From Adineta vaga (taxonomy: Eukaryota > Animalia > Rotifera), in contig CP075494.1 in assembly GCA_021613535.1 (NCBI GenBank), forward strand, positions 620,001 to 684,000: a stretch of 64,000 nt of DNA, given 5' to 3'. This document shows positions 14,751-64,000 of the stretch, piece after piece (position 1 is the stretch's first letter; the number at the start of each line of letters is the position of its first letter). Position numbers and translations under genes: made by a program. The notes under the pieces were generated by a model. The model saw only the letters and a program-made list of their open reading frames with translations, was not told the DNA's origin and searched no databases.

Positions 14751-16326
14751 ATGGTTACAGCAGCAATCCACTGTGCCCTATTTATTATTTTCAAGTAGTT
14801 ATAAAAATTCAATATTTTATTTTATAATAAATATTTTGATTAATTTAGTTTATCAATAATAAAAGTAAATTGTTATATATGTTATGAAACATCTCAATAT
14901 AGTCGATGTTCAACAAATAGTGCATGTGGTTGTTTTGATATGGTAGATTCTGATGGTACTGGAATATGTGGATTTCTTTGGATAAGTTGTTCTCAACTTA
15001 ATTTATGTAATTCTTCAAATAATATTTGTGAGAAATTTGGTGCTATATGCATACATCATCCTCGTTGTAATTCCCATCCTGTTTGTTATCCGTCATCAAT
15101 GATTGATCAAAGAATATGTCCAACATTAAAAAGTAAGAAAAAAACTATATTATCATCATAGAGTATTATTTTCAAATGAATTGATTTTTATTAATAAATA
15201 GATATTACCACAACAACTATAACTACAACTACAATTCAACAGGCTTGTCTTTCTTGTCGAGTGTATGTGTCAGATAGATGTAGTATCCACACCCTCAAAA
15301 TATATTGAAAACTATTTTTCTTTAGGATGGGATAATACTGGTAGTATGAATAGTCGAAGATTTGGTCATGCAGCATCTGTTTTAGCAGATGGAAAAGTTA
15401 TTGTTACTGGTGAAACTCAAGGTTTCGATACTTTTTATAGTGTTAATTTAAATGATGTTGAAATATACGATCCATTATCAGAAAATTGGACAACTACAAA
15501 TAATATGATTCATCCACGAAATACTCATACATCAGTTGTTTTAAAAAATGGAAAATTATTAGTTATTGGAGGAATAAGTAATACATATGTTTTAAATAGT
15601 ACTGAACTATATGATCCTCAGACAAGAATTTGGTCTTTTACTGGATATCTTAATAAGAAGAGAAATTTTCATACATCCTCTTTATTAATAGATGGAAAAG
15701 TATTAGTTACAGGTGGAGCAAATCCTTATAGTATAATTAGTACTGAATTATATGATCCTGTAACACAAATTTGGACAATTACAGGTAATATGACTTTTTC
15801 ACGACAGAAACATCAAGCATCTTTATTAATAAATGGAAAAATTTTAATTAGCGGTGGATACGGAGATGGTTATTGTTTGAATAGTACGGAATTATATGAT
15901 ACTCAAACAGGAAAATGTACAATTACAGGTAATATGAAATATACACGAAGTGGTCATACATCAACTGTCTTAACAAATGGAAAAGTATTAGTTACTGGAG
16001 GATATGATGGTAAAAATACACTAGATAGTGCTGAATTATATGATCCTCAAACAGGATTATGGACAACTGTCGAAAATATGAAATATGCACGAAAGGAACA
16101 TACAGCATCTTTATTAACAAATGGAAAAGTATTAGTCGTAGGTGGACAAGATATATCTATGTTAAATACTGTTGAATTGTATGATCCAATAACACAAAAT
16201 TGGATAACTATTGATAATATGAATTATAAACGAGGTTATCATACAGCATCTATTTTAACAAATGGAAAAGTATTAATTGTTGGAGGATATTCTAATATCA
16301 CTTTAAATACTGCAGAATTATATTAA
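14751..16326 (+). CDS. Putatively secreted protein: Cys-rich N-terminal domain, Thr linker and kelch beta-propeller
   Basis: About 7 kelch repeats (GKVLVTGG...AELYDP..W) in 15326-16326; upstream exons encode a hydrophobic leader and the Cys-rich CSTNSACGC...CIHHPRC. The junction near 15240 is not clearly in frame. Confidence 0.8.
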
Positions 16327-41716: not shown

Positions 41717-43680
41717 TCGTCTGAATAGATTTGACGAGAACTTTTAAAATGCTTTTGAAGGGGATGCTTTTTTAATCTAGATTATAGAATAAAATTTGGT
41801 GAAAAATTACAATGAGTTTCATACGAAAAGAGAAAATAGCCTTAATCTTTCTCTGTCTGTTTCTATTGGCATTCAGCAGTGAATTATCTTTAACATGTGT
41901 GTTGCAGAGGATTCTACTTAGTTTTCTCTTCTCAAAGAAAAACTAGACAATAATGAATGAAGCATAAAAACAAATAAAACAATATCTTAGATAATTATGA
42001 TAATTTCATGTTTTTCATACTACAGTAGTTGCTCTTTTTCTTTATCATTCGAAATATCCACCGAGATGTATACATGTCAAGTTCAATAAATTTCTCATAA
42101 CGAATCAAAGTAAAAAAAATATTTCTAGTTACCATTGATAAGAAGAATCATTTAAAAAACCTCCGACGAACTTTGTTGAGGAAACCAATACTTCGAGATA
42201 TTGGAGTACAAGCACTATTATCAAAACTAAAATTTTCTACAGAAAAGAACACTGAAATTGAATTTGTCTGACAGACACAGCGAAATAAGCCATCCAAATG
42301 GCAAACCCAAAGTGCCAATCTATTCAAACAACTATAGAACATTTTCTTTTCAGGTAAAAAGCCTTTTTTTTGCAATCATATCTTCGACCGTAAAACAATG
42401 AAATTATCGGTTATCATTTTTTCCAAGAATACTGAATAAAAGAGAAAAAATACAAATAGAATCACACCTTAGCATGCTTCTTCTACTCAGCGATCAAATT
42501 ACGTATAAAAGCTCAACATAAATATTATCAGAACAAGTCATTTGATACATATTGTTGAAATGTTTCGTAAACTCCGTCTGATGATATCCATAGACAAGAT
42601 CGAAATCGCGATAACAGTGGAGTGAGCCATTCGGTAGTTATTATTCTTTACATCACGATACAATAACTGATATTTTCGTAGCAATAGTGTAGGTGTGACT
42701 ATCTTTTCTTTATCAAATGATCAAGTGACAGATTTTTGCATGTATCAGGAAAAACTACAGAAGTATGTCGTTAATTTCAATTACGAGTGGGATTTTCATC
42801 ATGTTTCATCACGCAATTCATTTACGTGTGTTATTATTCTCCGCTATTCACTTCCTATGACTTTTTGTTGACGACGCGACAGTTTACCTTTTTGAGTCAT
42901 GGTTGAATGTACTTATAAAAGCTGTTTGTTTTTTCTGATTTTGTTTTAGTTCGGTATGTTCTTTCTTGATCGACAGCATCACTTTCGAATATGAGACGAC
43001 GATGCCTACTCTTATCTATATTAAATTTCAATCCTTCACTGTCTTATTAAATATATACCATTAGTTGCATATTTACAGCAGCTCTTTCCAATCTTCTCGT
43101 CTTCTGAGAGAGCTGAAAGTGTGTCTCTAAAAACGCGGGAAGTGTGACGCTGCTATTTCGTTTGCACTTTTCTATTAGCAATCTTTATTTCACAATTTTA
43201 GATAATATTTCTTCTAATTATTTGATATGTTTCGTCATGTGCACAATCGTGTTCGTTTCAACTATTTAGCTAGTACCGTCGACAAGCAGATATCGTACTA
43301 TGGTAAGACCTACTGCATAGATCTCTGTGTGATACTCCATCCTTTTTCGTATTTTTCGTAACAAAATCTATGTGCAAGACTTCTGTTATTTCATTGAAAA
43401 ATCGATTAAGTGACAACGCCTCTCGTAGAAAGCTATAGTGCAGATCGATTGGTTTCTTTGATTGTCTCGAATTGAAATAATACTGATGTGCTCGCAAATA
43501 GCGTTATATTATGAATATATGAGTGATATGATAAAAAAGATTTCCAATACAAGATCTATCGAACAGTTGTATGTTTACATTCTTATTCTTGTTGCGTTTT
43601 CAGGTGGAACTTCTACAAGAATACTTCCGTCACGGACACAATCAACGAGTCCTGTTGGTCAAACACGAGAGGTTAACTCG

Positions 43681-44940
43681 ATGAGGGAACAATTTCGTCA
43701 AAATATGCAAAAATATTTCGAATCTTCTACTACGGGAAAAGGTCTCATTGATTTTCTTTCGTTAGCGCATCCAGATCGAATTGGTATCCACATCGATAAC
43801 AATGACTATTTGCATTTGTCATACGATCCAAATTTATTTGTTTCTGACGCACGTATATTTGATGCTTACAACGTTATTCCAAAAATCGAAAACACGGCCT
43901 TTCAAACTTCATTGAGTCAGAAGCAGACAGTTCCCATTCATCGACAGGGATCAGATAACATTATGTCAGGAGTATTTTTACAACAGGATTGTCTTCAAGA
44001 TCAAGTGTCTGACTTGTTAGCGAAGCAAATACTCGGGAAAGATAGCGTATATTTAGCTCAAAGTGGATATGCCGCTAATTACGGTCTACTTCAAGCAATA
44101 GTTATCCCGGCGACGAGTCACGTCTATATCGATACCGCTGCCCATGAATCACTTTGGCAAGGTGCCAGCCGTGGTATTATCCACAAGATCAAACATAATT
44201 GTCTAGACGATCTCGAACAAAATCTTCGTAAATTTGGTAGTGGTATTATTGTTGTTGACTCTCTCTACTCGGCGAAAGGCTCGATTGCCAATCTGGTAGA
44301 ACTATGTGATCTCAAGGAGCGATACAACTGCATGTTGGTAGGCGATGAATCTCATTCAATTGGATTGTACGGACCTCATGGTCGTGGTCTTGCAGCATTA
44401 GCGAATGTGACAAATCGTATTGACTTTATTACAGGTAGTCTGGCTAAAGCATATTGTGTTCGTGCAGGATTTATTGCCGGTCGTGCCGAGGAAGTATTGT
44501 ACGTGAGAGAAAAATCGTCATCGTCGATATTTAGTAGTGCACTTATGACTTGGGATTTGCAATGTCTTCAACGTGCTATCGCAATCATTTACAATGCAGA
44601 TAATAAGCGAAAAAGACTAATGGATCTTGCAACAGTCGTACGTCATGCTGCAGTGACATTAAAATTTGATGTCGAACAGCCATCGTTGCCAAGTCCCATT
44701 CTATGTCTGAACGGTGGACCAAATATACTTTCGAAAAAACTTCAAATCTACTTCGAAAACGCAGGTATTTCAGGTGCCATATTCGTAGCACCTGCTACAC
44801 CCGCTACTCGATCTATCTTGAGACTCACATTGCATGCGGGCTTATCGGATGAAAACGTCGCAAGAATAATCAGTACACTCGAATCTATTGCTCGATGTCA
44901 TCGCGCTGATCTTCCACATACATTTTTAAAGCATTCTTAA
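43681..44940 (+). CDS. PLP-dependent alpha-oxoamine synthase, CqsA/LqsA (alpha-hydroxyketone autoinducer synthase)-like
   Basis: Motifs NDYL, MSGVFLQ, LAQSGYAANYGLLQ, VYIDTAAHESLWQGA, GIIVVDSLYS, DESHSIGLYGPHGRGL, GSLAK (PLP lysine), IFSSAL, PAT and RLTL. The reading frame is open from 43462; a candidate acceptor at 43603 and a 33-nt exon at 43270-43302 suggest spliced 5' exons. Confidence 0.88.
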   Translation: MREQFRQNMQKYFESSTTGKGLIDFLSLAHPDRIGIHIDNNDYLHLSYDPNLFVSDARIFDAYNVIPKIENTAFQTSLSQKQTVPIHRQGSDNIMSGVFLQQDCLQDQVSDLLAKQILGKDSVYLAQSGYAANYGLLQAIVIPATSHVYIDTAAHESLWQGASRGIIHKIKHNCLDDLEQNLRKFGSGIIVVDSLYSAKGSIANLVELCDLKERYNCMLVGDESHSIGLYGPHGRGLAALANVTNRIDFITGSLAKAYCVRAGFIAGRAEEVLYVREKSSSSIFSSALMTWDLQCLQRAIAIIYNADNKRKRLMDLATVVRHAAVTLKFDVEQPSLPSPILCLNGGPNILSKKLQIYFENAGISGAIFVAPATPATRSILRLTLHAGLSDENVARIISTLESIARCHRADLPHTFLKHS

Positions 44941-45119
44941 TAAATGAGCCAATGAGAAAGATCCAAATCATGAAGTATTTTACACTTATTTAAATTTCAA
45001 ATACGTTTTTTTCAATCACTATTTTGAATTATGTATTAGATTTTTCAATAATCTAAAAGCAATACAAGTCAATTAATTAATGATGATTATTATTATTTAA
45101 TAAATTTAAAAAAGTAGTC

Positions 45120-47234
45120 TTATTCATTTGAAGATAAAATAAACTTGTGTACTCGATGATTTTGCATATCGCCTACATAAAAATTACCGTGTCTATCGAA
45201 TGACAAACCGACAGGCCAATTCAATTGATTTGATTGTCCTCTGTTTTCTCCACCAACAATGATATTTCCTTGTGTGGCTCCTTTGATCCAACGCATGATT
45301 CGAGCATTACCAGCATCAGCTACGTAGACTGTACCCAATCGATCGACAACGACTCCTTCAGGAAAAGACAATTGTTTAAGTTCATTTCCCGTATTGTGAC
45401 CACCAGCTACAATAATTCCTTGTTTTGCACCTTCTTCCCATTTCATCACACGATGATTTTTATATTCAGATACATATACTGAACGATCTTGATTGACAAA
45501 TACATATGTAGGGTGAGAGAGTTGATCGAGGCGGTTTCCACTTCCATTCCCACCTGCAACTACTATCCCTTCAGATTCTCCTCTTTCAAATCGCCTTACT
45601 TCATGTCGCTCATCATCAGTGACATACAATGCTCCCTTCTCATCCATTGTTAAACCCCAACAACTGATATTCGAAATCATCGTTTCTCCATTTGTACCAT
45701 TCCCACGACGCCATTGAACAACTCTTCTGTTCGAACGATCGCAGAGGATGAGACTATTTCCAATTTTATCCAAAATCACATCTCTTGGGTTTGCCAATTT
45801 ATAAGTCGAATTTCTACCAGCAACTACTCGACCATTCACTGCACCCGATTTCCATTCCGTAATACGATTATTTGCCCACTCAGAGACATAGACAGTTTCA
45901 TTATCATCAACATATAAACCTAGTGGCTGGTAGAGTTGATTGGCTTTATTGCCTGCTTCCTTTCCTCCAGCTACAGTGACACCATTTTCTGTCCATTTTG
46001 CATTCGGATAAATATCAATACTAGGTGATCGTAATGGTGCTGAAATAAAATTAAAATATGAAGCAAAATTCAATATCAAACTGAATAGCAGAGACGATCG
46101 TTTTTATAACTCTCTCTTTATAGACCAAAAGGCGAAACATAGATGATGGTGAACTTTGGTGAATGACTGATGAAAAGGATTAAATATAACATATCAAATA
46201 CTGATTTTATAGATCATAAATCTTGGACAATTATTTTTGTTCAAGATCTAACAAGACCGAGATAGTCTTTGAGATTCTTATATTTGGCAAAGATGTTTCA
46301 TTAAAAATCGAACTATTTAACTGACTTTCATGCTATCATAAGAAAATAAGTATTTATAGAATCGAGTTTAGATTTCAATACAACGCGGTTAAAATAATTA
46401 CGTGGTTTTTTGAATTGTTCCATTTTATACTTCAACTCTGGAATTTTTTCAATAGATTGATTATTCGATGTTTCCAACAGTTGAATTCTTACAATGAATA
46501 GATTATGCAATATTTTCAATCGATCAATATCAATGAAATTCTTAATAGAAAAAAATATTAATATTCCACATCCAACAATCAATAATAAGATAAATAATAA
46601 TAGAAATTTCCACATCTTTCTTCAGTTTACTAATTGTTTCCTTTTGTAAGTTGGAGGTTGTGGTTTTTCATTTGAGTTCATCATTGGTATTTGATTAATA
46701 TTTGTATTATTACCACAAGTATTTTTTTCATTAACGAGAACTAAATTAGATTTTCGATAAATGTAAAATATAAATATAGTTAAATGCTTACGTTGTGGCA
46801 TAGAATATTTATCTTCATTTTGATGTTGATCTTCAAGAATTTGATTTAACATTGGTGGCATTATCATTGATAGACTTTCAACTGATTGGTTTTGTCCATC
46901 TGATTGATTGTGTCTTCGATATTCTAGATTAATAAAATACAAAAGGAAATAAATTTAAAATAAACAAAACAAAAAACTTACCTCTTAATAATTTCATAGC
47001 ATCAATACATTGAATTTCATCAAATGCATTTATTAAAAAAGTAAAATCTTTTTCATTGATTTTATCTTGATCAAAAAGAGAATCCATAAGACTGAGTGTT
47101 CCACTAAGTGTTGGATCATCTCGAATTCGTCGTGGTACATCATTGCCGAGATAGAAATGTAAACGTTTTCGATCATCGTTACTAAGACGATCTTGTAATT
47201 TCAAAATAATAGCACGCAAACGATGATTATCCAT
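45120..47234 (-). CDS. DED (death effector domain)-TM-NHL repeat membrane protein, interrupted by one in-frame stop
   Basis: Exon 1 MDNHRLRAIILKLQDRLSNDDRKRLHFYL...LMDSLFDQDKINEKDFTFL (DED-like); all introns phase 1; TM WKFLLLFILLLIVGCGILIFF; last exon (about 46040-45120) encodes NHL repeats; TGA at 46622-46624 is in frame just before the TM. Confidence 0.75.
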
Positions 47235-47674: not shown

Positions 47675-49777
47675 TCAATGATCCTCATTTTCATTCTCAA
47701 TTAATGACGTTAATTTTTGACGAATAATCTGAAGTGTATTTTGAAAGGATTGTGTATTTGGATGTATTTCGCCTAATGCACGAGTACTTAATTCAATAGC
47801 TTTAAGACTATAATCTAATGCATCTTGATAAAAACCTTTATGATAATAAGTAAACGCGATATTATTATAAGTAATTGCTAATGATGGATGTTCAATAAGT
47901 AAAGATTTTGTTTCTATATCTAAACATTTTTTATACATATTCAAAGCTTGATCATAGCGTTTTTGTTCATAATATATAGTAGCTAAGTTATTTAATGATT
48001 CAGCAATAGTTGGATGTGTTGATGGTAAATTTCGTATCCAAATAGTCAAAACTTTCTGAAATTGTTCAATAGCTTCATCGATTTTATTTTGATCATGTAA
48101 GATCATACCCATACAATGAAATCGAGCTGCTAAAATAGTTTCATGATTTGAATGACGTTGATCAATGTCAAGAGCTTGTTGAATATATATAAGAGCAACA
48201 TCAAGTTGACCTAATTCACGATAAACACCACTCATATTAGCAAATGTAAGAGCAAATTCTGGATCATCATCTGATAAATACGACAATTTAATTGCAAGTG
48301 ATTGTTCATATTCTGTAATAGACTTTTCTAATTCTCCCATTTCATGATAGATAAAACCGATTTGATGATGTAATGCTGCTTGAGATTGTTGATCACTATT
48401 ATTCACTTCATTCAATGCTAATTGTAAAAACTGTTTCGCTTCTGTATATTTTCCAATATTAAGTAACAAATTGTATAGACGATCTCTTGGTGTAGCGTGT
48501 TGCACTTGTTCCCGCATATATCGAGTTAATTCAGTCAGTTGAAGATCATTAGCGTTCGTTAATGTCAATTCAACAAGCCAAAAATCGTCATGTGAATTTT
48601 GTTGTGTGATATTTTCAATGCGAAAGACAGTTCCCATGGAAAAGAGAACTTCATTTTCACCATCACCAAAGAAACTTATTTCATCAATTTGAGCAAAGAC
48701 TGGCATATCAGTATCATTATTTCGTGCATGAATCTTTAGTAGAACAGCAGTGATATTATCATCCAATAATGCATTATTACCAGCAAACATTTCAGCTACA
48801 TCTCTATTTTTACTAGTTGATAAGAAAATATTGATCGATAAAAGACCACCTTGATTATTTTTTAATTTAAGAAATTCATTAGATGACATTTGTTGACCTC
48901 GATAGAGAATAATTTCATTGAAATCTGAAGAGTTAATAGAATTATTTTGTTGATAATGATGCAAATAAACAAGTTGTTCGTGAAGTTCTTTAACAAATAA
49001 ACGCATAGCATAAAGCGTTTCAATATCTTGTAATCGTAACGCTTTATTTAACATTTTATACATAAATCCATCTCGAGTATACCACCAAATCGATGAATGA
49101 TTTTGATAATTCTTTTCCAATTCATCAATACGATTGAGTTCTTGATGATTATCAACATATTTTCGACGACAATATTCAATCATTTCCGTTAAATTACTAG
49201 TTTCATTATTAGCAATATCTAAAAGATATTCTTTAAGTAATTGAGCGTACATGAAATTTGCTTCTTGTTCATCATTAGTTGAATTTTCATTTCCAATAAC
49301 ATTGAAACCGATCAAATTGTGTTCACATATTTTAACATCTTTTCGTAATTGTGCACAGATATTTGTCATAGAAGAGAATATACCTCGACATTTTTTATGT
49401 TTTTCAAGGTATAGTTCTTGTTGATTGCTCGTTTTCTCTTCATAGAATATATAAAATAAATGAATTTGTCTTAATTGATTCAATATTTGTTCAAGACTAG
49501 TCTGTATACTCGAAGAATTGGTAATAATCAAAAATATATATTCATTTTTAATATCAGTTATATAATCAATAAATATATCGATATCATTGAATACGTGTAT
49601 GTCATTGAAAATGTGATGAAATTCGTCAATAAATATTGAATATTTCTTCGCATCACTATTTTCACTGATTGAGATGTCGAACCAAATGAGAGTTAAGTTT
49701 TCTGCATTTTGCTGACGAGTTTTACTGAGATCGTCTCTTATTCTTATTGAACGTTCTGAAAATGATTCAATTTGCAT
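47675..49777 (-). CDS. NAD:arginine-type ADP-ribosyltransferase domain plus TPR-repeat protein
   Basis: R-S-E motifs LYRGQ, FLSTS and ENEVLF; WWYT motif; C-terminal TPRs (HPTIAESLNNLA, HPSLAITYNNIA). Confidence 0.9.
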   Translation of the reverse strand: MQIESFSERSIRIRDDLSKTRQQNAENLTLIWFDISISENSDAKKYSIFIDEFHHIFNDIHVFNDIDIFIDYITDIKNEYIFLIITNSSSIQTSLEQILNQLRQIHLFYIFYEEKTSNQQELYLEKHKKCRGIFSSMTNICAQLRKDVKICEHNLIGFNVIGNENSTNDEQEANFMYAQLLKEYLLDIANNETSNLTEMIEYCRRKYVDNHQELNRIDELEKNYQNHSSIWWYTRDGFMYKMLNKALRLQDIETLYAMRLFVKELHEQLVYLHHYQQNNSINSSDFNEIILYRGQQMSSNEFLKLKNNQGGLLSINIFLSTSKNRDVAEMFAGNNALLDDNITAVLLKIHARNNDTDMPVFAQIDEISFFGDGENEVLFSMGTVFRIENITQQNSHDDFWLVELTLTNANDLQLTELTRYMREQVQHATPRDRLYNLLLNIGKYTEAKQFLQLALNEVNNSDQQSQAALHHQIGFIYHEMGELEKSITEYEQSLAIKLSYLSDDDPEFALTFANMSGVYRELGQLDVALIYIQQALDIDQRHSNHETILAARFHCMGMILHDQNKIDEAIEQFQKVLTIWIRNLPSTHPTIAESLNNLATIYYEQKRYDQALNMYKKCLDIETKSLLIEHPSLAITYNNIAFTYYHKGFYQDALDYSLKAIELSTRALGEIHPNTQSFQNTLQIIRQKLTSLIENENEDH

Positions 49778-53282: not shown

Positions 53283-56200
53283 ATGACTTCCAAAATTATT
53301 GCTCAAGAACCGATAGCTGTTGTAGCTATCGCATGTGAATTTGCTGGAGATATACATTCGGCAACAGATTTATGGCATGTATTAGAACAGAGTAAAGATG
53401 TTGGCAGTGCTATTCCACAAGAACGTGCTGATCTTGCCTCATTTAGTGCTCATATGGTCAATCAAGATAAGGATAATCAACTTAGTCAAAATTTAATTCG
53501 TGGAGGTTATTTTCTCTCTAATGCACAATGGGATACCTTTGAGCAAAGTTTTTTTGGTCTTTCCAATAATGAAGCTCTTAGTATGGATCCAGCACATCGT
53601 CTACTTATGCTTAAATTTGTACATTTAATCGAAGATGCTGGTTATACCTTAGAAAAGATGTATGGTTCACGTACATCAGTACATATTGGTCAATTCTCCA
53701 CAGATCAAGCACTTACTATGTGTCGAATGAAACCCGAATTTCGATTACGATTACATGGACCAAATGCAAGTCTTTACAATGCAGCTGCTCGACTTGCATA
53801 TCATTTTAACTTGAATGGTCCTAATGTGTCACTAGATGTTGCTTGTTCGTCATCATTAGAAGCTGTTCGTCAAGCTATACAAACTCTTCGAGCAGATGAA
53901 GCAGATATGGCAGTATGTGGTGGTGTCAATGCTGTCTATACACCAGAGAATATACTTAGTGGTTCACTTATTGGTGCTCAGTCACCAGATGGAAGAAGTC
54001 GATCATTTAGTATTGATGCAAATGGTTATGCTAAAGGTAATATTCATATTTATTATATAAGTTTAGATATTATTTTAATGATCTATTTTAGGTGAAGGTC
54101 TTGGTCTTGTTTTACTGAAACGACTAAGCGATGCTGAACGTGATGGTGATCGAATCTATTGTATTTTACGTGATGTTCATAGTCATCATGATGGAAGTGA
54201 AGGCAAGACTAATTTTGTTATACCATCTGGTATTGGACAGACACGTCTTCTTGCTGATATTTATCGACGAAGTGAAACAGATCCTAAGAGTGTTTTCTAT
54301 GTGGAAGCACATGGTACTGGTACACCAGTAGGTGATCCCATTGAAGCAAATGCTTTAGGTCAATTCTTCCATCGTTCATCAATAGATCCTCCGTTACTCA
54401 TTGGATCTATTAAAAGTAATCTTGGACATACAGAAGGTGCAGCTGGTATTGCTGCTCTTATTAAAGTTGCAATGTGTATGCGTCATCGTGCTATTCCACC
54501 AAACATGCATTTCACAGCACTCAATCCAAAAATTGAAGCACAACGATATAATCTACATGTTGTTCAACATTATGTACCATTTCCATCTGTAACAAACAAT
54601 CCAATTATTATAGGTATCAATTCTTTCGGCATGGGTGGTAATACGACGCATGCCATTGTCGAAGAATATCGACCGCAACAGAAAAAATTATTGAATGAAT
54701 TTGATCACAATCATAATAATCAAAACAAACTTGAACTTAAACAATCCTTTGTTTTTCTCTTCTCGAGTAAGTTCAAATTTTTCTATTCGTATTCATTATT
54801 TTCTTGTTTTATTTAGCAAAAAGTCAAGAATCACTCGTCAAACAAGTCGCACAATTCAATATATGGTTACAAGAAATGTCTGACAAGATAAACGATGATT
54901 CTGATACTTTCCTTGCTCGCATATCTAAACAACTTCTTCTCAAACGCACAATCAGCTATGAACATTTAGCCATTTTTATATCTACTGATCTTGCACAGTT
55001 ACAGAATCAAATCGATGCTTTTCTTGCTCAAAAAAATGCATCTGGACTTCTTCTCACTACACGTCCAATGTTATCATCAAGAAAAATTTGCTTTGTCTAC
55101 AGTGGTCAAGGACCTCAATGGTGGGCAATGGGTCGTCAATTATACAAGAATGAACCAGTCTTTCGTCAGTGGATACAACGAATCGATGCTGAATTCACAA
55201 AAATCAATGAAGATAAATGGCAATTATTAGATGAACTTATGGAGACAAAAGATGAAAAGACATCTCGTATTAATGATACCAATATCGCTCAACCTTCTAT
55301 ATTTGCTATTCAAGTTGCTCTAACTGCTCTTCTCAACTCGTGGCAAATCTTTCCTGATACTATCGTATCACACAGTGCTGGAGAACAAGCAGCTGCTTTT
55401 GTTTCAGGTCGTATTACATTAGAAGAAGCTATTCGTATCGTTTATAATCGATCACGTCTTCAAAATCGTAACACTCGTCAAGGTGGTGGTATGTTAGCTG
55501 TCTCTATGAGTGAAGAACAAGTGAAAGATGACCTTCTTAAAGGTATAGAACATCTTGTCTCAATTGCTGTCATCAATAGTCCACATTCTGTGACATTGAG
55601 TGGAGATGAGAAAATAATTGATGAATTGTTTGAAATTCTTACAACATTTCATCCAAATGTGTTCAAAGCGCGACTTCGTATTGAAAATGCTTTTCACTCA
55701 CATCAAATGGATCTATTTAATATTCAGAATGAAATGCTTTCAACACTTGGCGATATTTCAGGTCTTCCTTTACAAGATCCACAACAAATGTTCAACGTAC
55801 AATGTAGTAAAGCTCGTCTATACTCAAGTGTCTATGGTGGCTATGTAAATGATCATACACCATTAAATGCTCGTCATTGGTGGGCTAACGTTCGAGAATG
55901 TGTTCGATTTTACGATGCAATGACAACTATAATTCAAGACGATGCTGCAGATATCTTTCTTGAAATTTCACCTCATCCAGTATTGGCTACATCAATTGAT
56001 GAATGTTGTGAATTACATTCTTTGAAACATCTTATTCTTCCAACATTGAAACGAAAGGAAGATGAACAAACAACATTACTTACAAGTCTTACTCAACTCA
56101 CTTCATCACCAATTGTTTGGCAACATTATCTTGAATCTCGAGAAATCAAATCCACTGATAATGATAGTGAACTTTTTGAAACATTTCCATCATATGCTTT

Positions 56201-59200
56201 TAATACAACTTCTTGCTGGTACGAATCCAAAGATTCAGTCATTGAACGTCTTTCTTATCGTCTTCCCAGTCATCCACTTCTGGGCATTCGTCAATGGACT
56301 CAACAGACTAATCCAACATGGAGAAGTCTCATCAATATCAATCTTCCTCAACACGCCTTCTTAAAAGATCACAAAATTCAAGATGCTATCTTATTTCCAG
56401 CTAGTGGTTACATTGAATTAGCATTAACTGCCAGTCGTCAATTACTTTCATCGACTGACGATTCTCAATCAATTATTGTCTTCGAACAAGTTGAATTCAT
56501 TAATGCACTCGTTCTTACTGAACATGAATTGACAGAAATATTCACTCAAATAGTAATGCCAATGCGTGAATGGTTTATAATACAGTCGACCATGGACAAC
56601 AGCTGGTCAAGATTGTATTCGTACATCAGGCATGTCAGGTGTTGATGTTCTTAAATCATTCACTGATACAAAATTACTTAATCAACATTCATTAAACGAA
56701 TTTACACTTCATGCTCGAGGTCAAATTAAGATAGGTGATGACAAACAACAATTACCACTTCTAACTGATGTACCCATTGATCGTGATTTATGTTCTACAC
56801 TTGAACCAGATAATGTCTATAAACATCTAATGTCACGTGGTTATCAGTATGGATCTTTATTTCGATTGATACAATCACTTCATAACACACAATCAATTGT
56901 CGAAGGTGAAATTGATTGTACTATAGCCAGTCAAGATAATGTTCCAGTCTATAATCTAATTCATCCAGCTGTCCTCGATGCCTGTTTACATCCAGCTTTA
57001 GCTATATTACCTGGAATTTCTACTACTTTTATTCCAGTTTCTATTAATAAGATAACTATATATGGAGAAATATCAACGTTAAATTCACCAGTACAAGTTC
57101 GTGCAGCCTATCATGATAACATTTGTGGTATAGCTAAGCAACGAACGTATGAATTTGATTGTACGATTTGTTCAAATGATACAGAAATGAGAAAACCTTT
57201 AATCAGTTTTGATCGTATTACAATTCAGCAAGTACAAGGTTCACAGTCCGGCCTATGGGCATCAAACACATCCGTGTTCGATAAATTGAATATATTAGTA
57301 GATTTACCAAATCAAGAACTCACTACACATCTTGATACGATCATGAACAATTATTGCTTAAAAACAGTGTGGAATGATGAACGAATAAGAATTGGTGCAG
57401 CTGATCTTCTACCATCAACTGAATACATTATTAAGACTCACATTGATTCTACGGGTAATGAAGATCTAATTGAATCTATTGAACCGTTAAATCTACTGGC
57501 TGCATATTATGCTCAAATGGCTCTTGAAGATTTGACACTTGTTCCTATTCAAGAACAACAACAAGAATCACTTTTAGCTGCATGTCGTTCTCTTACCTTT
57601 CATTCGAAAGCAAAACCAACATATCATTCAACCCAGATCTATCTCATGCAATTGTTGCGTCAATTTCCACGTCTTACACCAATTTTGTCTGTTTTGTCTA
57701 CTTGTGGACAAAATCTCAGACAAGTCCTCAATGGACAATACGATGGAATCGATGTACTATTGGGTAATGAAAAGATGGAATCGGAATTGCAAGAAATTCA
57801 ATCACTCATATCTTCTCATCAAACATATTTCATTTTTGATATTCTTAATCAATATCTTCAAGAAAAATTTGGTAAAATATTAGCTGAACGTAAACTTCGC
57901 ATATTCTGGTTAGGCAGTGGTAACAATTCGGATGATCTACGAGTATTTCTTCTTTTACTTGATTTATCAGAAAAAACAGATATATTAATCGACATAAACT
58001 ATACAAACTCGAATCCACATGTACTTGAACAAGTTGAGAAAACTTTCACTACGCAATTGAAAGATCAAAATCGAATACGTATAATCTATGATGACAAATT
58101 TGACTTATTCAACAATGAAAATAACAAAAATATGATCGTCGAATCATACGACATTATATTTGGTGCTAATAAATTACAAGGCAATCAAGATTTATCATAT
58201 TCACTTGTTATTCTTCGTCAACTACTCGTTCCTAATGGTCTTCTTCTTCTACTGGAATTAACTGATGCTCCACTTTACTTCGATATTATCTATGGTTTAA
58301 TAGATCAATGGTGGTCTCCAGTCGATCACCGACGTGCTCTACTCAATATTAATCAATGGACAAGAAGTATACGAGAAATAGATGGATTTGAAACTGTTCA
58401 AACTCGAAATACATCATTTGGTAACTCATTTATTGTAGTCCAAAAATCGACGTCATCTAAAGTTTTAACTATGCTCGAAGAACGACAAAGTCAAGCATGG
58501 CTTATTTTTGACGATGATAGTACACCTAGTATGGGAAACGCACTAAAATCTCTCTTGCCATCTGTTAACATCACATTGTTACATGCATCTAATTCAAGTT
58601 CCGACAATATTTGTTCTAAAATTGAAGAAATGATGACAACATATGCGCAGGTACATATCGTTTTTGCTTGGTCACTGAATCAAAAATCAATCAATGATGA
58701 CAGTGAAATGGCAATTGCACAATATGAAACAAATATATGTGATACATTTATTCATATTCTTCAAACAATACAAACAGCAGAACCACAGTCGCATCCATTT
58801 GTATATGTTCTTACACAAAATGTTCAACCTGGTGCTGGTAGCGATTTAAACCCAATTGGTTCACCACTTATTGGTCTTGCACGTAGTCTTGCTCTTGAAT
58901 ATGAACAACATCATTTAAAACTTATTGATTTACAATCGAAATCATCACCAGCCATGATACCATCTCTTGTTCGTACACTTACCGAACATCTCATAACATC
59001 TAGATATGCAGATGATCTTGATGAAATTGTTCTTCAACACGATAAACAAACTGATACTATTCATCGCTTGGAATGGCATTATGAAATGCTTCAAGAAGAA
59101 CAAGATATTAACGAATCAGTCAAATCAGAACAAACGACAATTATTCCACACAACGATGCCGATCAACAACCATTTCGTCTTCAAGTCGCTCCATCTCGTT

Positions 59201-61929
59201 TTCTGGATGATTTAACATGGGTACCCGATGTAAAGAAAAACATACTACATACTGACAAAATAGAAGTTCGTGTACATTGTGTTGGTATCAACTTTCGAGA
59301 TGTTCTTAAATCGAGTGGTCGCTATCCATATATGCGTCCCTTTGCACAAACTAGCAATGATCAAGCTATGGTTGATCGTGATACAGAACCTGGTATTGAT
59401 TTTATCGGTACTGTTGCACGTACTCATTCAAACGAGAAAGTAAAAGTAGGCGATCGTGTTTTTGGTATGGCACCAGGTGTATTTCATTCCCATGTACATC
59501 TTAGTCCTAATGAATATGTCCGCATCCCAGACGATTGCAATCACTTTACTGATGAACAATTAGCTGCTTTACCAAATGCTTGTATGACTGTTCTATATTC
59601 ATTAAAATATCGTGTTAATCTACAACCTGGTCAAACTGTACTTGTACACGCAGCAACCGGTGGTACCGGTCAAGCTTGTATTCAATATTGTCAGTCAATT
59701 GGCGCTCGAGTTCTGGCTACTGCAGGCACTGATGAAAAACGACGATTTCTTCGTGAACACTATGGTATTGAACACGTATTTAATAGTCGAGATCTTTCAT
59801 TTGTAAATGGTGTACGTGCGCTTTTACCTAATGGAGTTGATATCATTGTTAATTCGTTGTCCGGTTCTTTTCTTCAAGAATCAGTAAAATTACTTGCCTC
59901 ACAAGGTCATTTTATTGAATGGGGAAAACGAGATTTATTTGACAAGAAAAAATTGTCTATGTTCGATCTACGTGATGATTGTAGTTTCCATGTTATCGAT
60001 ATTACTTCACTGTATGTTCATCGTCGCGATATCTTCGGACAATTAATTGAAGAACTTTTACAATTGATTATCAAAGGCGTTTTCAAACCAATTGAACCAA
60101 CCAAAGCATATGAACCATCAGATATCATTGACATCTTTAAACAATGTAATAATGGTCAGATGAGTGGTAAATTTGTTCTTCGTCTTACTAATTCTCAACA
60201 ACCATTAAATTTAAACTGTCAATCACCTCCACAATGCACAGAAGGTAGTGTTTACTTTTCTTATTTCTAATGAATCTATAATATTTCACTTTTTTTTCTC
60301 GTTCTAGAAGAAGATCCAATGTTTCCATTTGAAGTATGTCATCAAGGTACAATTTTAATTTCGGGTGGTTGTGGTGGTCTCGGTCTCACAATGTCTCGTT
60401 GGATGATAGAAAAACGTTGTGTCAAACGTTTGACGCTTATGAGTCGACGAACAGTAGCACAAATTGAACAAGAAGACAATCCTGAATATGGAGAGTGGCA
60501 ACGATTACAACAGGCAGCAAAAAAATACGATGCTCATATTGATTTAGTTCAAATTGATGTCACTAATTTTGAAGATGTTCGTAATCTAATCGAACAACTT
60601 AGTCAAACACCTTATCCCATACGTGGTATCATTCATAGTGCAGTAGTTCAAGAAGATCGAAGTTTGGGAAAATTATCACAAGAAAATCTTATACATGTCT
60701 TAGGACCAAAAGCTCGTGGTGCTTGGAATCTTCATCGAGCATCAGAACTTGCTGCTCCTTCACTTCATTTCTTTGTTCTCTTCTCATCGATTCGTAATCA
60801 TATGATCGATCTAGCATCAGGTGGATACAATGCTGGCAACCAATTTCTCGATATTCTTGCTCGTTACCGTGCTGAAAAACTCAATTTACCCGCTCTTTCA
60901 GTCAGTTTGCCTGCAGTGAGTGGTGCTGGCATGTTTCATCGACATCGTGAAATGCTGACAAGTTTACAAAATACATCAGGTTTTGAATTGGTACCTACAG
61001 TTGGTGTATTTGAACTTATCGATCGATTTCATGTCAATCAAAAGTCTTGTCCATGTCCAATTATCTTTGCCGCCAATTGGAAACAATTATATGAAAATCG
61101 AGATAAATTAGTTACACATCAACTACGCAAAATAGCAATACAACAATATACAATTGCAAATGGTTCGTCAATGTTAACTATTTCATCGGATGATGTTGAT
61201 TCATTCGATTCGATCTATGATAAGTTAGAAACCATTGTCGAGCGAACACAAATTACCGTTGCTCGACTCTTGGGTGCAAGCAGTAATGATCAAATTTCTC
61301 TCGATCGTTCCCTTGTCAGTCAAGGTATGGACTCATTAGCTGCTGTATCACTTTACAATTGGTTAGGACAAGAGACAAACATATTTATTCCATTAGCTGA
61401 TCTTCTTCAAGGACTTTCAATACAAACTATTGCCGAACAAGTACATAAGAAGCTTCATAAAAAAAAACGAACAGATACAGAATCAAATGACTCCGGAATT
61501 GATTTTCATATTGAATCGATTGAAGATAATGAAACGAATTTATCCAACAATTTATCTTACACTGGTACAGAGAATATTCTATGCATACGACGTCCAATTA
61601 ATTCTGAATGTCCCATTCTCTTCTATATCTTACCAAATTCTACTTCCGACAACACTCATATGCCAGAAATAATCGTGGAAAAGATATCAAAAAATAATAA
61701 TTCTCCTTTACCAGCTGCCATTTATACTATTAATAAACCACAAGCATCGATGACCAAAGACATAACAAAAATCGCGAATATGATGATCGCTCAAATGCGT
61801 CGAATTCAACCATATGGACCTTATAAATTAGTGACTACACGTGGTGAACAAGGGGAAGTGGTCGCTGGTGAGATGACGAATCAACTCAAACGACATTCAG
61901 TTGATTCCACCATTCAACTACTTTCGTAA
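53283..61929 (+). CDS. Highly reducing type I polyketide synthase KS-AT-DH-(psi-MT)-ER-KR-ACP-(psi-TE), 3 introns and one frameshift near 56580
   Basis: Exons 53283-54036, 54092-54766, 54817-60244 and 60308-61929. KS DVACSSS/HGTGT/KSNLGH; AT GQG/SHSAG/AFHS; DH HKIQDAILFP and HPAVLD; ER LVHAATGGTG; KR GGCGGLG/YNAGN; ACP GMDSL; TE-like QPYGPY. Confidence 0.93.
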
Positions 61930-62297: not shown

Positions 62298-64000
62298 ATG
62301 GACTTAACTTCCTATCGACGAGTTGCATCTTCGGCACTTAAAGTTTCCGGCAGATCGAAAGCTATAGCTTCATATGCTCAACAACGTATTTGGCTCCATG
62401 AGCAACTCTATTTTGATCGAATGTCTTCTTCACTAGCAATCTACAATATTCTTCTCCCATTAAGAATCAAATGTGGCTCGCTATCAGTAGAACATGTCCG
62501 ACTCGCTATACTTGCAGTGCTTGAAAAGCATAAAGTTCTTCGAACGGCTGTTCGTTTTAATGCGGAAACAAATCAACTCGAACAAGAAGTACAACCACTC
62601 AGCCATGATGCTTATTCGTTTGAACATACCCGAAATGTATGCTGTGCCGAACAACTGGATGCAATGCTCACGGCTGAAACAGTAACCAACTACTTTGATG
62701 TAGAAAAGGGCAAAGTATTGCGTTGTCATTTAATACGAATCAATGACGAGAATGAATCTGTAAATCTTCACTCAGGGGATCTTCTTCTATTCACTGTTCA
62801 CCATATTGCTTTCGATAATACTTCACTTCGATTATTTACTCTGGCCTTTGCCGAAGCATGCGGTCAATTAGAATCTGTACAGCCACCAAACAAATTACCA
62901 CAATATGTTGACTTCACTCTTTATGAACAATCTTTAGTGCAATCATCGAGTGCCGAACGAACACGCCAGTTCTGGACATTATTGCTTCAGGATTATGATT
63001 GGACTAAAACATTTATATTACCGGTTAACAGCTCACAGATCACAACAACTGTTCGCTCTGGACGTGGCTATTCAATCGCATTTAATCTGAATGCTGATTT
63101 AGTACAAGCACAGATGGCATTTGCTGCACTTCACAATATTTCTATGTTTCAACTATATCTCGCTTGCTATTACGTGTTTCTTTTCAAATTAAGTTCAGTA
63201 CAAGATCTGTGCGTTGCCGGTACGTTCAATAATCGTCCTTTGGCAGAAATGAAATCGATGATTGGAATGTTTGCAAATACGATACCCTATCGAATCAATA
63301 TTAATCCAGACGGTTCATTCCAAAAGTTGGCTGAACAAGTACAACATTTATGCTTGTCCATTCTTAATCATGCTTATCTACCATATCAACAAATTCTTGG
63401 TGTTCAAGCAAACGAAAGATACCCGATGCCCCAAACATTCTTTCACTATGAATCACTTGTGTCTTCCACTACATATAGTACCACAGCGGAGATTGCTACA
63501 AATGATAAGAACGGTACGGTTTTCGATATTTATTATGATCGAGACCGATCACATGGCAATGGTATTGCCTTATTCGATATGACACTGGCTGTATCACATG
63601 ATCATCATGGAAAAGCTACAGAGTGCTTTCTAGAATGCTCAGCTGATTTGTTCCCCAATGAAATATACGTCAAACAGATGGTCGATCGCTTCCAATGTAT
63701 GCTTGAACAATTGTTTTTGGATCAAACATTTAATATCACCACACAATCCATGAATCAATTATCTTTGCTTCGTCCATCAGAAGTCAATGAAATCGATTCA
63801 ACTATCTTCAAGCGACTACCTAACATCAACGAAGGTAAAACTGCGAATTTTCTCTACAAAAGACTCTTTAAATGATATTTTTCTTTCTCTATTAGGACCT
63901 GCTTCATTTGCACAAGCTCGTATCTGGCATGATGAACATGTCAGATTTGATCCCAATCAACCTCAAGTGGCCATCTACAATATGCCATTTCTATTTCATA
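62298..64000 (+). CDS. Non-ribosomal peptide synthetase, 5' part (two consecutive condensation domains; truncated by the window end)
   Basis: C1 ASYAQQRIW...HHIAFD...IGMFANT; intron 63835-63895; second C domain starts GPASFAQARIW...AIYNMPF. Confidence 0.9.

Follow-up and report, generated by a model that had tools for sequence, protein, structure and literature searches.

Can an animal genome encode a synthase for the kind of signal molecule by which bacteria sense one another? The question is raised by a gene of the bdelloid rotifer Adineta vaga that lies in a 64,000-nucleotide stretch of contig CP075494.1 (positions 620,001 to 684,000, assembly GCA_021613535.1). We analysed this stretch as a whole and refer to it as the window; positions are those of the window unless a chromosome or locus is named. 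The original prediction, made from the letters alone, had placed at 43681-44940 a complete quorum-sensing autoinducer synthase resembling Vibrio CqsA and Legionella LqsA, horizontally acquired, domesticated and set among intron-bearing eukaryotic genes. Our analyses favour, with a probability of roughly 0.7, a functional A. vaga gene of foreign origin that encodes a divergent alpha-oxoamine synthase (AOS) of the CqsA/LqsA branch.

Enzyme family, active site and predicted fold

Read from the methionine at 43681, from which residues are numbered here, the protein matched Pfam PF00155 (E 5e-24) and the NCBIfam model NF005526 for alpha-hydroxyketone-type quorum-sensing autoinducer synthases, at 317.3 bits (E 1e-94), with bioF (155 bits), serine palmitoyltransferase (SPT; 145 bits) and KBL (133 bits) as runner-up models. 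Among all PDB sequences, Vibrio cholerae CqsA chains from three entries came first (E 5e-59), and SPT was next (E 1e-25). An AlphaFold2 model built on a 19-sequence alignment had a predicted local distance difference test (pLDDT) score of 82, with the catalytic core (residues 105-419) modelled confidently. When this model was compared with the PDB by Foldseek, the six best matches were CqsA chains (E 8e-36 to 6e-34), followed by SPT, KBL, BioF and ALAS at E about 1e-26 and template modelling scores of about 0.65-0.7. Given that the profile and PDB sequence matches are far beyond chance and that the best fold matches are CqsA chains, the observation of a complete CqsA-type synthase is confirmed, and we conclude from sequence and modelled structure that the gene is predicted to encode a complete alpha-oxoamine synthase of the CqsA/LqsA family, dependent on pyridoxal 5'-phosphate (PLP). 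The preference of the original prediction for CqsA/LqsA over BioF, KBL, ALAS or SPT held in profile scores, in PDB sequence and fold matches, and in two phylogenetic trees.

The motifs listed in the original prediction as typical of CqsA and LqsA were all found. In the HMMER alignment, MSGVFLQ, QSGYAANYGLLQ, VYIDTAAHESLWQGA, GIIVVDSLYS, DESHSIG and GSLAK of the window protein paired one-to-one with MSASFLQ, QSGWNANVGLLQ, VYIDFFAHMSLWEGA, GIIVVDSIYS, DESHSLG and ASLAK of V. cholerae CqsA. The active-site elements originally singled out, namely the PLP lysine of GSLAK, DESH and the histidine of AAHESLW, are likewise intact and aligned to CqsA. His155 (44143-44145, forward strand), the PLP-stacking residue in AAHESLW, pairs with the His of FAHMSLW in CqsA; it does not vary among the 80 bacterial CqsA-like proteins and 12 rotifer proteins compared, nor in the SPT/BioF outgroup. 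The DESHS motif (44344-44358, forward strand) holds Asp222 and His225, which correspond to CqsA Asp202 and His205 in the alignment to 2wk8; it is invariant across the CqsA-like family, whose Ser at the third position sets it apart from the DEAHS of the outgroup. Lys256 in GSLAK (44446-44448, forward strand), the Schiff-base lysine that binds PLP, corresponds to CqsA Lys236 in the same alignment, and its position is invariant in every compared sequence.

This correspondence extends beyond the catalytic residues. Of the alignment columns, 100 are conserved to at least 90% among the 80 bacterial CqsA-like proteins; the window protein has the conserved residue in 74 of these, and it shares with CqsA the residues that discriminate the family from the outgroup: QS at 127-128, Ser224, SLAK, Arg261 and Phe368. 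The full family signature is present, comprising NDYL, MSxxFLQ, QSGxxAN, DESHS, SLAK, an Arg after the Lys motif, and PAT...R. Compared with V. cholerae CqsA (the CAI-1 synthase; PDB 2WK7-2WKA, 3HQT, 3KKI), which was its best match in both sequence and structure, the rotifer protein has the same fold, active-site residues and family motifs, with 33-36% identity over the core. Unlike CqsA, the rotifer gene has an intron, an extension of ~51 residues and an inserted loop of ~25 residues. With BioF, KBL, ALAS, SPT, Fum8 and SphA the enzyme shares PLP-dependent Claisen-type condensation and the overall fold, whereas the other alpha-oxoamine synthases score at most 155 bits against 317, and the SPT outgroup carries DEAHS and TFSK.

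Gene structure, alleles and selection

The A. vaga assembly comprises 100.8 Mb in 6 contigs, and the gene lies at C5:663-665 kb within the window (C5:620001-684000), 0.66 Mb from one end of the 16.93-Mb chromosome 5. The only other strong copy in the genome is a paralog at C5:16742579-16743535, 0.19 Mb from the opposite end. Weak, exon-split AOS matches elsewhere in the genome (at most 70 bits) are the animal's own alpha-oxoamine synthases, at separate loci. The window is AT-rich (GC 26-39%), and the GC content of the gene is rotifer-like. In a search of 5.8 billion proteins, identity to the window protein was 81% for the A. vaga paralog, 68-80% for Adineta ricciae and 71-76% for Adineta steineri; after the Adineta proteins came metagenome and Logan proteins at 54-73%, followed by a sharp drop to bacterial and metagenomic matches of at most 40%, many of which are annotated as CAI-1 autoinducer synthase. 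The rotifer proteins themselves are publicly annotated as 'hypothetical protein' or 'aminotransferase class I/II'. Three Adineta species, assembled separately, have orthologs of the gene, on contigs of up to 723 kb.

That the gene sits in an animal genome, as first proposed, is supported by its place on a 16.9-Mb chromosome-scale contig and by the recovery of both alleles from independent reads. We compared contigs from two DNA runs of 2013 with window positions 42900-46300 and found the reference allele with 0 differences, together with a second allele that differed at 40 of 1544 bases (2.6%) and was continuous through the gene and its flanks. Within the coding sequence (CDS), 16 allelic differences were listed, 10 of them synonymous by hand count.

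The open frame at 43462-44940 on the forward strand holds the 419-codon stretch 43681-44937 in the open reading frame listing of the window, and the ATG at 43681 had been taken as the start. This had to be corrected: the paralog has ATT and A. ricciae ATA at this site, which is therefore no conserved start, and the predicted start is instead the ATG of an upstream exon. Exon 1 (43227-43302, forward strand) is 76 nt long and consists of the ATG, 25 codons and the first base of a split Gly codon; the peptide translated from 43227-43301 forms the first part of a basic N-terminal extension. It is followed by a spliceosomal-type intron of 301 nt (43303-43603, GTAAGA...TTTTCAG) and by exon 2 (43604-44940), which encodes the remainder of the extension (43604-43680) and the complete alpha-oxoamine synthase domain and ends in the TAA stop codon (44938-44940). 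In a DNA alignment of the window, the paralog (L002) and A. ricciae (L014), the ATG and exon 1 are conserved, and both the donor G^GTAAGACCT and the acceptor TTGTTGCGTTTT(C/T)AG^GT (carets mark the splice junctions) are invariant in all three sequences; the intron interior has many large indels and is far shorter in A. ricciae. The exons join in frame to give a GGT Gly codon, in agreement with the YYGG junction of the paralog, whose NCBI model (P0004) opens with a peptide homologous to that of window exon 1. The candidate spliced 5' exon of the original prediction is thus upheld in a comparative sense, by conservation of exon 1, of the GTAAGA donor and of the TTTTCAG acceptor ending at 43603. 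Given that exon 1 and the splice sites are conserved and the ATG at 43681 is not, we predict a CDS of 43227-43302 joined to 43604-44940, with 470 codons including the Gly codon split by the intron. Exon 2 was searched by itself, and exon 1 was translated and aligned as DNA. An AATAAA hexamer at 44939-44944 (forward strand) overlaps the stop codon and is a possible polyadenylation signal, or maybe a chance occurrence in AT-rich DNA.

Two regions set the rotifer proteins apart from bacterial CqsA. The N-terminal extension of ~51 residues is basic, with abundant Arg, Ser and Thr and just two acidic residues, a character shared by the extensions of A. steineri and A. ricciae; it is probably a putative mitochondrial-type presequence, as judged from its composition. 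Between the NDYL and MSGVFLQ motifs lies a variable, probably disordered loop (43834-43947, forward strand), which is ~25 residues longer than the matching stretch of bacterial CqsA. Residues 54-98 had pLDDT values below 50 in the AlphaFold2 model, and the length of the loop differs between rotifer homologs by whole codons. Its ratio of nonsynonymous to synonymous substitution rates (dN/dS) is close to 1, whereas the remainder of the protein has a ratio of about 0.15. Compared with the window gene, the loop of the paralog (L002, G000:C5:16741079-16745035) has a +1 indel, for which a -1 indel some 100 nt away compensates, so that the paralog lineage (P0004; A. ricciae P0005) reads about 33 loop codons in a shifted frame before returning. 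The loop DNA is similar between the window gene and the paralog despite this frame difference. Because A. ricciae P0005 has this shifted peptide too, the frameshift predates the split between A. vaga and A. ricciae, and the compensation of the indel pair argues that the loop is translated even though its sequence is unconstrained. We also considered whether an in-frame 81-nt GT..AG segment at 43840-43920 could be a retained intron and rejected it: A. ricciae and A. steineri have no GT and AG at the aligned sites, the frame is open in six diverged sequences, indels are of whole codons, and the frameshift in the paralog is compensated.

Outside the loop the gene has evolved under constraint. For the region after the loop, dN/dS values by the Nei-Gojobori method were 0.155 for window versus paralog (dS 0.41), 0.119 for window versus A. 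ricciae (dS 0.58) and 0.128 for window versus A. steineri (dS 0.76). The catalytic residues are kept in all 12 rotifer sequences, and the frames are open in two paralogs and several species. These substitution patterns indicate purifying selection on the catalytic core. The sequence comparisons support both horizontal acquisition and domestication of the gene. For domestication, the signs are the conserved spliceosomal-type intron, the added N-terminal extension, purifying selection on the core, the presence of a paralog, and the occurrence of orthologs in three or more Adineta species. For acquisition, it is the finding that all relatives outside the rotifers are bacterial or come from metagenome contigs, with identity of at most 47%.

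Origin, surroundings and alternative explanations

The source of the gene was addressed with two quick IQ-TREE trees of 66 and 41 rows (LG+C20+F+G4 with posterior mean site frequencies), for which support is by the Shimodaira-Hasegawa-like approximate likelihood-ratio test (SH-aLRT) only and the outgroup, on a very long branch, was limited to proteins annotated as SPT or BioF. The phylogeny proposed as a check on the family assignment placed the rotifer clade within the CqsA-like family and apart from this outgroup in both trees (SH-aLRT 100), alongside members from Vibrionaceae, Janthinobacterium, Duganella, Burkholderiales, Chlorobium and Nocardia; membership of the CqsA-like family is robust in these sequence trees. 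The rotifer-type sequences form one clade (SH-aLRT 99-100 in both trees), with a pair of orphan Logan proteins, P0023 and P0122, as sister (SH-aLRT 96-98). Together they join a subclade with LqsA-type or orphan synthases, including the protein of a Legionella sp. D16C41 plasmid (L024), the bacterial-contig protein P0022 from a metagenome, and further metagenomic sequences (SH-aLRT 99-100). Like the rotifer gene, the Legionella plasmid copy has no adjacent sensor kinase and scores below the NF005526 cut-off; the Legionella-type and P0022 genes differ in being bacterial and intron-less, in having neither extension nor long loop, and in their 33-43% identity to the rotifer protein.

The sister sequence was matched by more than 1000 CqsA-like proteins at E < 1e-40, of which the named ones are bacterial; no named eukaryote was among the listed homologs, and the search with P0122 returned only P0023 and bacterial CqsA-like proteins. 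P0023 ends in -SKL and P0122 in -AKL, both resembling peroxisomal signals, and both proteins have eukaryote-like low-complexity inserts. The contig of P0023 (L097; Logan SRR28285705, 7526 bp) is dense, intron-less and of 45% GC, and at least four ankyrin-repeat genes flank P0023, one of them F-box-ankyrin. The ESM Atlas clusters nearest to these F-box/ankyrin genes are from Nucleocytoviricota and Chlorophyta, and the contig may come from a giant virus or from a bacterium associated with amoebae. Viral contigs, scanned for homologs, yielded a single weak match of 34% that looked unrelated. The case for horizontal acquisition rests mainly on distribution: the family is otherwise bacterial, no other named animal or eukaryote was found to have it, and it is confined to one bdelloid clade, in subtelomeric DNA.

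The surroundings of the gene are those of a typical bdelloid subtelomere. Next to it, on the reverse strand, lie an NHL-repeat beta-propeller gene (45120-46079) with faint Pfam matches to lactonase, SGL and arylesterase, and a gene for a TPR protein of 700 residues (47675-49777). They are followed on the forward strand by a highly reducing type I polyketide synthase (PKS) with KS, AT, DH, ER, KR and ACP domains in five open frames (53283-61929) and by a condensation domain of a non-ribosomal peptide synthetase (NRPS; 62298-63875) that runs off the window. On the other side are a mariner/Mos1-type transposase frame (36704-37486, reverse strand), a fungal-type MACPF gene (27950-29317, forward strand) and a six-blade Kelch gene (15265-16326, forward strand). 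The PKS frames are separated by short gaps and overlaps consistent with short introns, and an innexin gene adjoins the paralog; innexins are the gap-junction proteins of invertebrates. The description of the neighbours as eukaryote-style therefore stands, on the split PKS and on the innexin gene. The PKS-NRPS genes probably make up one of the biosynthetic clusters, about 40 in number, that are reported from A. vaga subtelomeres. The NHL gene, which also adjoins the A. ricciae synthase, was considered as a functional partner and set aside, being absent beside the paralog and the A. steineri copy; with about 900 candidate members of its family in the genome, many in subtelomeric DNA, nothing can be read from its position next to the synthase. 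At 4 kb downstream of the paralog we also observed a gene of the CmcI/rhamnosyl O-methyltransferase family (L012 5664-6656, forward strand). This family is largely bacterial, and the gene may be another acquired one.

Several observations weigh against a functional CqsA-type gene of bacterial origin or limit how far such a reading reaches. The score of 317.3 bits falls below the curated NF005526 equivalog cut-off of 428, although it is still twice that of the next family; the cut-off is also missed by P0023 (338), P0122 (312) and the Legionella plasmid copy (about 354-355 bits), and passed by P0022 (446). Two positions that are near-invariant in bacteria are changed in all 12 rotifer sequences, Glu110 to Ser or Ala and Arg355 to Gln, and the long unconstrained loop stands in place of the N-terminal helix region. 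Immediately ahead of the catalytic Asp the reference allele encodes Gly221, whereas the second allele and all other sequences have Val there (G>T at 44342), and the two alleles may differ in activity. No sequencing run recorded as RNA was found to contain the locus; of four runs compared with it, the two genomic ones cover the gene, and the two guessed to be RNA are empty there. An approximately unbiased (AU) test did not reject a tree with the rotifers, P0023 and P0122 outside 24 grouped bacterial and metagenomic members (p = 0.52), and the tree so constrained was 0.9 log-likelihood units better; because of this result, we claim neither nesting within bacterial diversity nor a donor. The literature is also silent: the CqsA/LqsA family is not mentioned in PMC11258130 or its searchable supplements, a literature search found no paper linking rotifers or Adineta with CqsA, LqsA, autoinducer synthase or 8-amino-7-oxononanoate synthase, and the gene does not appear in the texts and searchable supplements of the two main papers on bdelloid foreign genes, nor, likewise, in a fungal-challenge expression study. 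Substrates, product, localisation and biological role, finally, are all things that we infer.

Some of these points could be read as signs of a decaying or functionless relic of a transfer, with an open frame kept by chance, as the runs guessed to be RNA are empty over the gene, the reference allele has Gly beside the catalytic Asp, and the score is below the family cut-off. However, the core dN/dS is about 0.12-0.16 over pairs with dS of 0.4-0.8, the catalytic residues are kept in 12 rotifer sequences, the frames are open in two paralogs and several species, and the one frameshift in the loop is compensated, which makes a relic highly improbable. Bacterial contamination or a chimeric assembly would agree with the bacterial nature of the closest characterised relatives. 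Nevertheless, the gene sits on a 16.9-Mb contig, flanked by rotifer-type families (NHL, Kelch, TPR, mariner transposase); it has a conserved GT..AG intron, rotifer-like GC and orthologs in separate assemblies of three Adineta species on the long contigs mentioned above. Given the two alleles in independent reads, the rotifer surroundings and the length of the contig, contamination or a chimeric join is so unlikely as to be negligible, and the concern raised at the outset about such a join was not borne out.

The two remaining alternatives accept a working gene and concern its route and its partners. The gene may have reached rotifers via another eukaryote or a giant virus, or may descend from a deep, non-bacterial branch of the family, a tentative possibility suggested by the sister proteins P0023 and P0122 (SH-aLRT 96-98), with their -SKL and -AKL ends and eukaryote-like inserts, by the F-box/ankyrin genes packed around P0023 and nearest to Nucleocytoviricota and Chlorophyta clusters, and by the AU test, which permits the rotifers, P0023 and P0122 as sister to all bacterial members. 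The contigs of P0023 and P0122 are intron-less and gene-dense, however, the viral-contig scan gave that single weak and unrelated-looking match, and neither a named eukaryote nor a named virus was among the listed homologs. F-box/ankyrin proteins are, moreover, also found in Legionella-like bacteria, which counts against a eukaryotic or viral route. Alternatively, the synthase could serve the PKS-NRPS cluster that begins 8.3 kb downstream, acting there in tailoring or release by joining a PKS-made acyl chain to an amino acid, as Fum8 and SphA do. Fum8 acts in fumonisin synthesis and SphA in sphingofungin synthesis; AOS enzymes do perform such release in fungal pathways, SphA was among the weak PDB matches, and the highly reducing PKS and the condensation domain lie just downstream on the same strand. 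We consider this improbable: two unrelated genes on the opposite strand (NHL and TPR) separate the synthase from the PKS, and the enzyme is of the CqsA family, not of the Fum8/SPT type. There is no KS domain near the paralog, the nearest strong KS match on chromosome 5 being the window's own, and the loci of A. ricciae, A. steineri and P0013 have no PKS within 10 kb. Given that about 40 biosynthetic clusters are scattered through the A. vaga subtelomeres (PMC11258130), proximity to one of them is expected by chance.

Predicted chemistry and possible role

If the gene is a functional, acquired synthase of the CqsA/LqsA branch, as we favour, its chemistry can be projected from that of the family. 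CqsA uses decanoyl- or octanoyl-CoA with S-adenosylmethionine (SAM) or, less efficiently, 2-aminobutyrate, and yields Ea-CAI-1 or Am-CAI-1 and later the hydroxyketone (PMC3376566). By analogy, the rotifer synthase would condense a fatty acyl-CoA with an amino donor, either SAM or a small amino acid such as 2-aminobutyrate, and the product would be a long-chain alpha-aminoketone or enaminone, which other enzymes could turn into an alpha-hydroxyketone. The N-terminal extension may act as an organelle targeting peptide, probably mitochondrial, that would place the enzyme near acyl-CoA pools. On this analogy, the rotifer itself may make aminoketone or hydroxyketone molecules of the CAI-1/LAI-1 kind.

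Who would perceive such a product is a separate matter. The locus of a Vibrionaceae homolog (L033) has a hybrid sensor kinase adjoining the synthase gene, whereas the rotifer gene has no CqsS sensor kinase beside it, and no kinase was found among its window neighbours (NHL, TPR, PKS). The plasmid locus of Legionella sp., the nearest named bacterial relative, is likewise without an adjacent sensor kinase. The N-terminal ligand-binding domain of Grimontia CqsS, used as a single query and thus a weak test, had no match in the genome. Given the lack of a neighbouring kinase and of a match in this weak test, only the synthase of a Cqs/Lqs system was found, and because no cognate sensor was found we favour a microbe-directed role over a quorum-sensing circuit of the rotifer. 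The product would probably act in chemical interactions with microbes, as signal mimicry, as interference or as a defensive lipid. A more specific version, in which a metazoan uses a captured synthase to make lipids of the CAI-1/LAI-1 class and, by releasing them, imitates or disrupts quorum sensing in the Vibrio-, Legionella- or Janthinobacterium-type bacteria that it eats or that colonise it, is doubtful at present, and we put the signalling interpretation forward as a hypothesis built on family analogy.

CqsA-like domains also occurred in fusions in metagenomes (P0131, 1195 aa; P0195, 655 aa; P0189, 2140 aa), where their partners were an MMPL transporter, a fatty-acid hydroxylase, or enoyl-CoA hydratase and HMG-CoA synthase domains. 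These fusions offer hints that the CqsA-like family has roles in lipid export and secondary metabolism beyond quorum sensing.

Massive horizontal gene transfer into animals has its textbook example in bdelloid rotifers, and one more foreign enzyme among their genes is unsurprising; this one is from a family so far known only as synthases of bacterial cell-to-cell signals. The kind of enzyme and gene acquisition by bdelloids were already known; what is new is a domesticated, selectively maintained synthase of the CqsA family in an animal, as read from its sequence. The captured gene has been duplicated and maintained by selection, and it has gained an intron and a probable targeting peptide. 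It resembles the bdelloid NRPS and PKS clusters in its subtelomeric location, non-metazoan origin, gained introns and plausible microbe-directed role, and differs from them in being a single small enzyme instead of a megasynthase (Nowell et al. 2024, PMC11258130). In this way it widens the chemistry of the acquired 'chemical arsenal' of rotifers beyond NRPS and PKS genes. An active enzyme would mean that signalling lipids of a bacterial type are made by an animal, and inter-kingdom signal mimicry would be testable with Vibrio and Legionella reporter strains. Should the released signals indeed jam or mimic those of bacteria, the gene would be the first case of a bacterial autoinducer synthase encoded, and put to use, by an animal.

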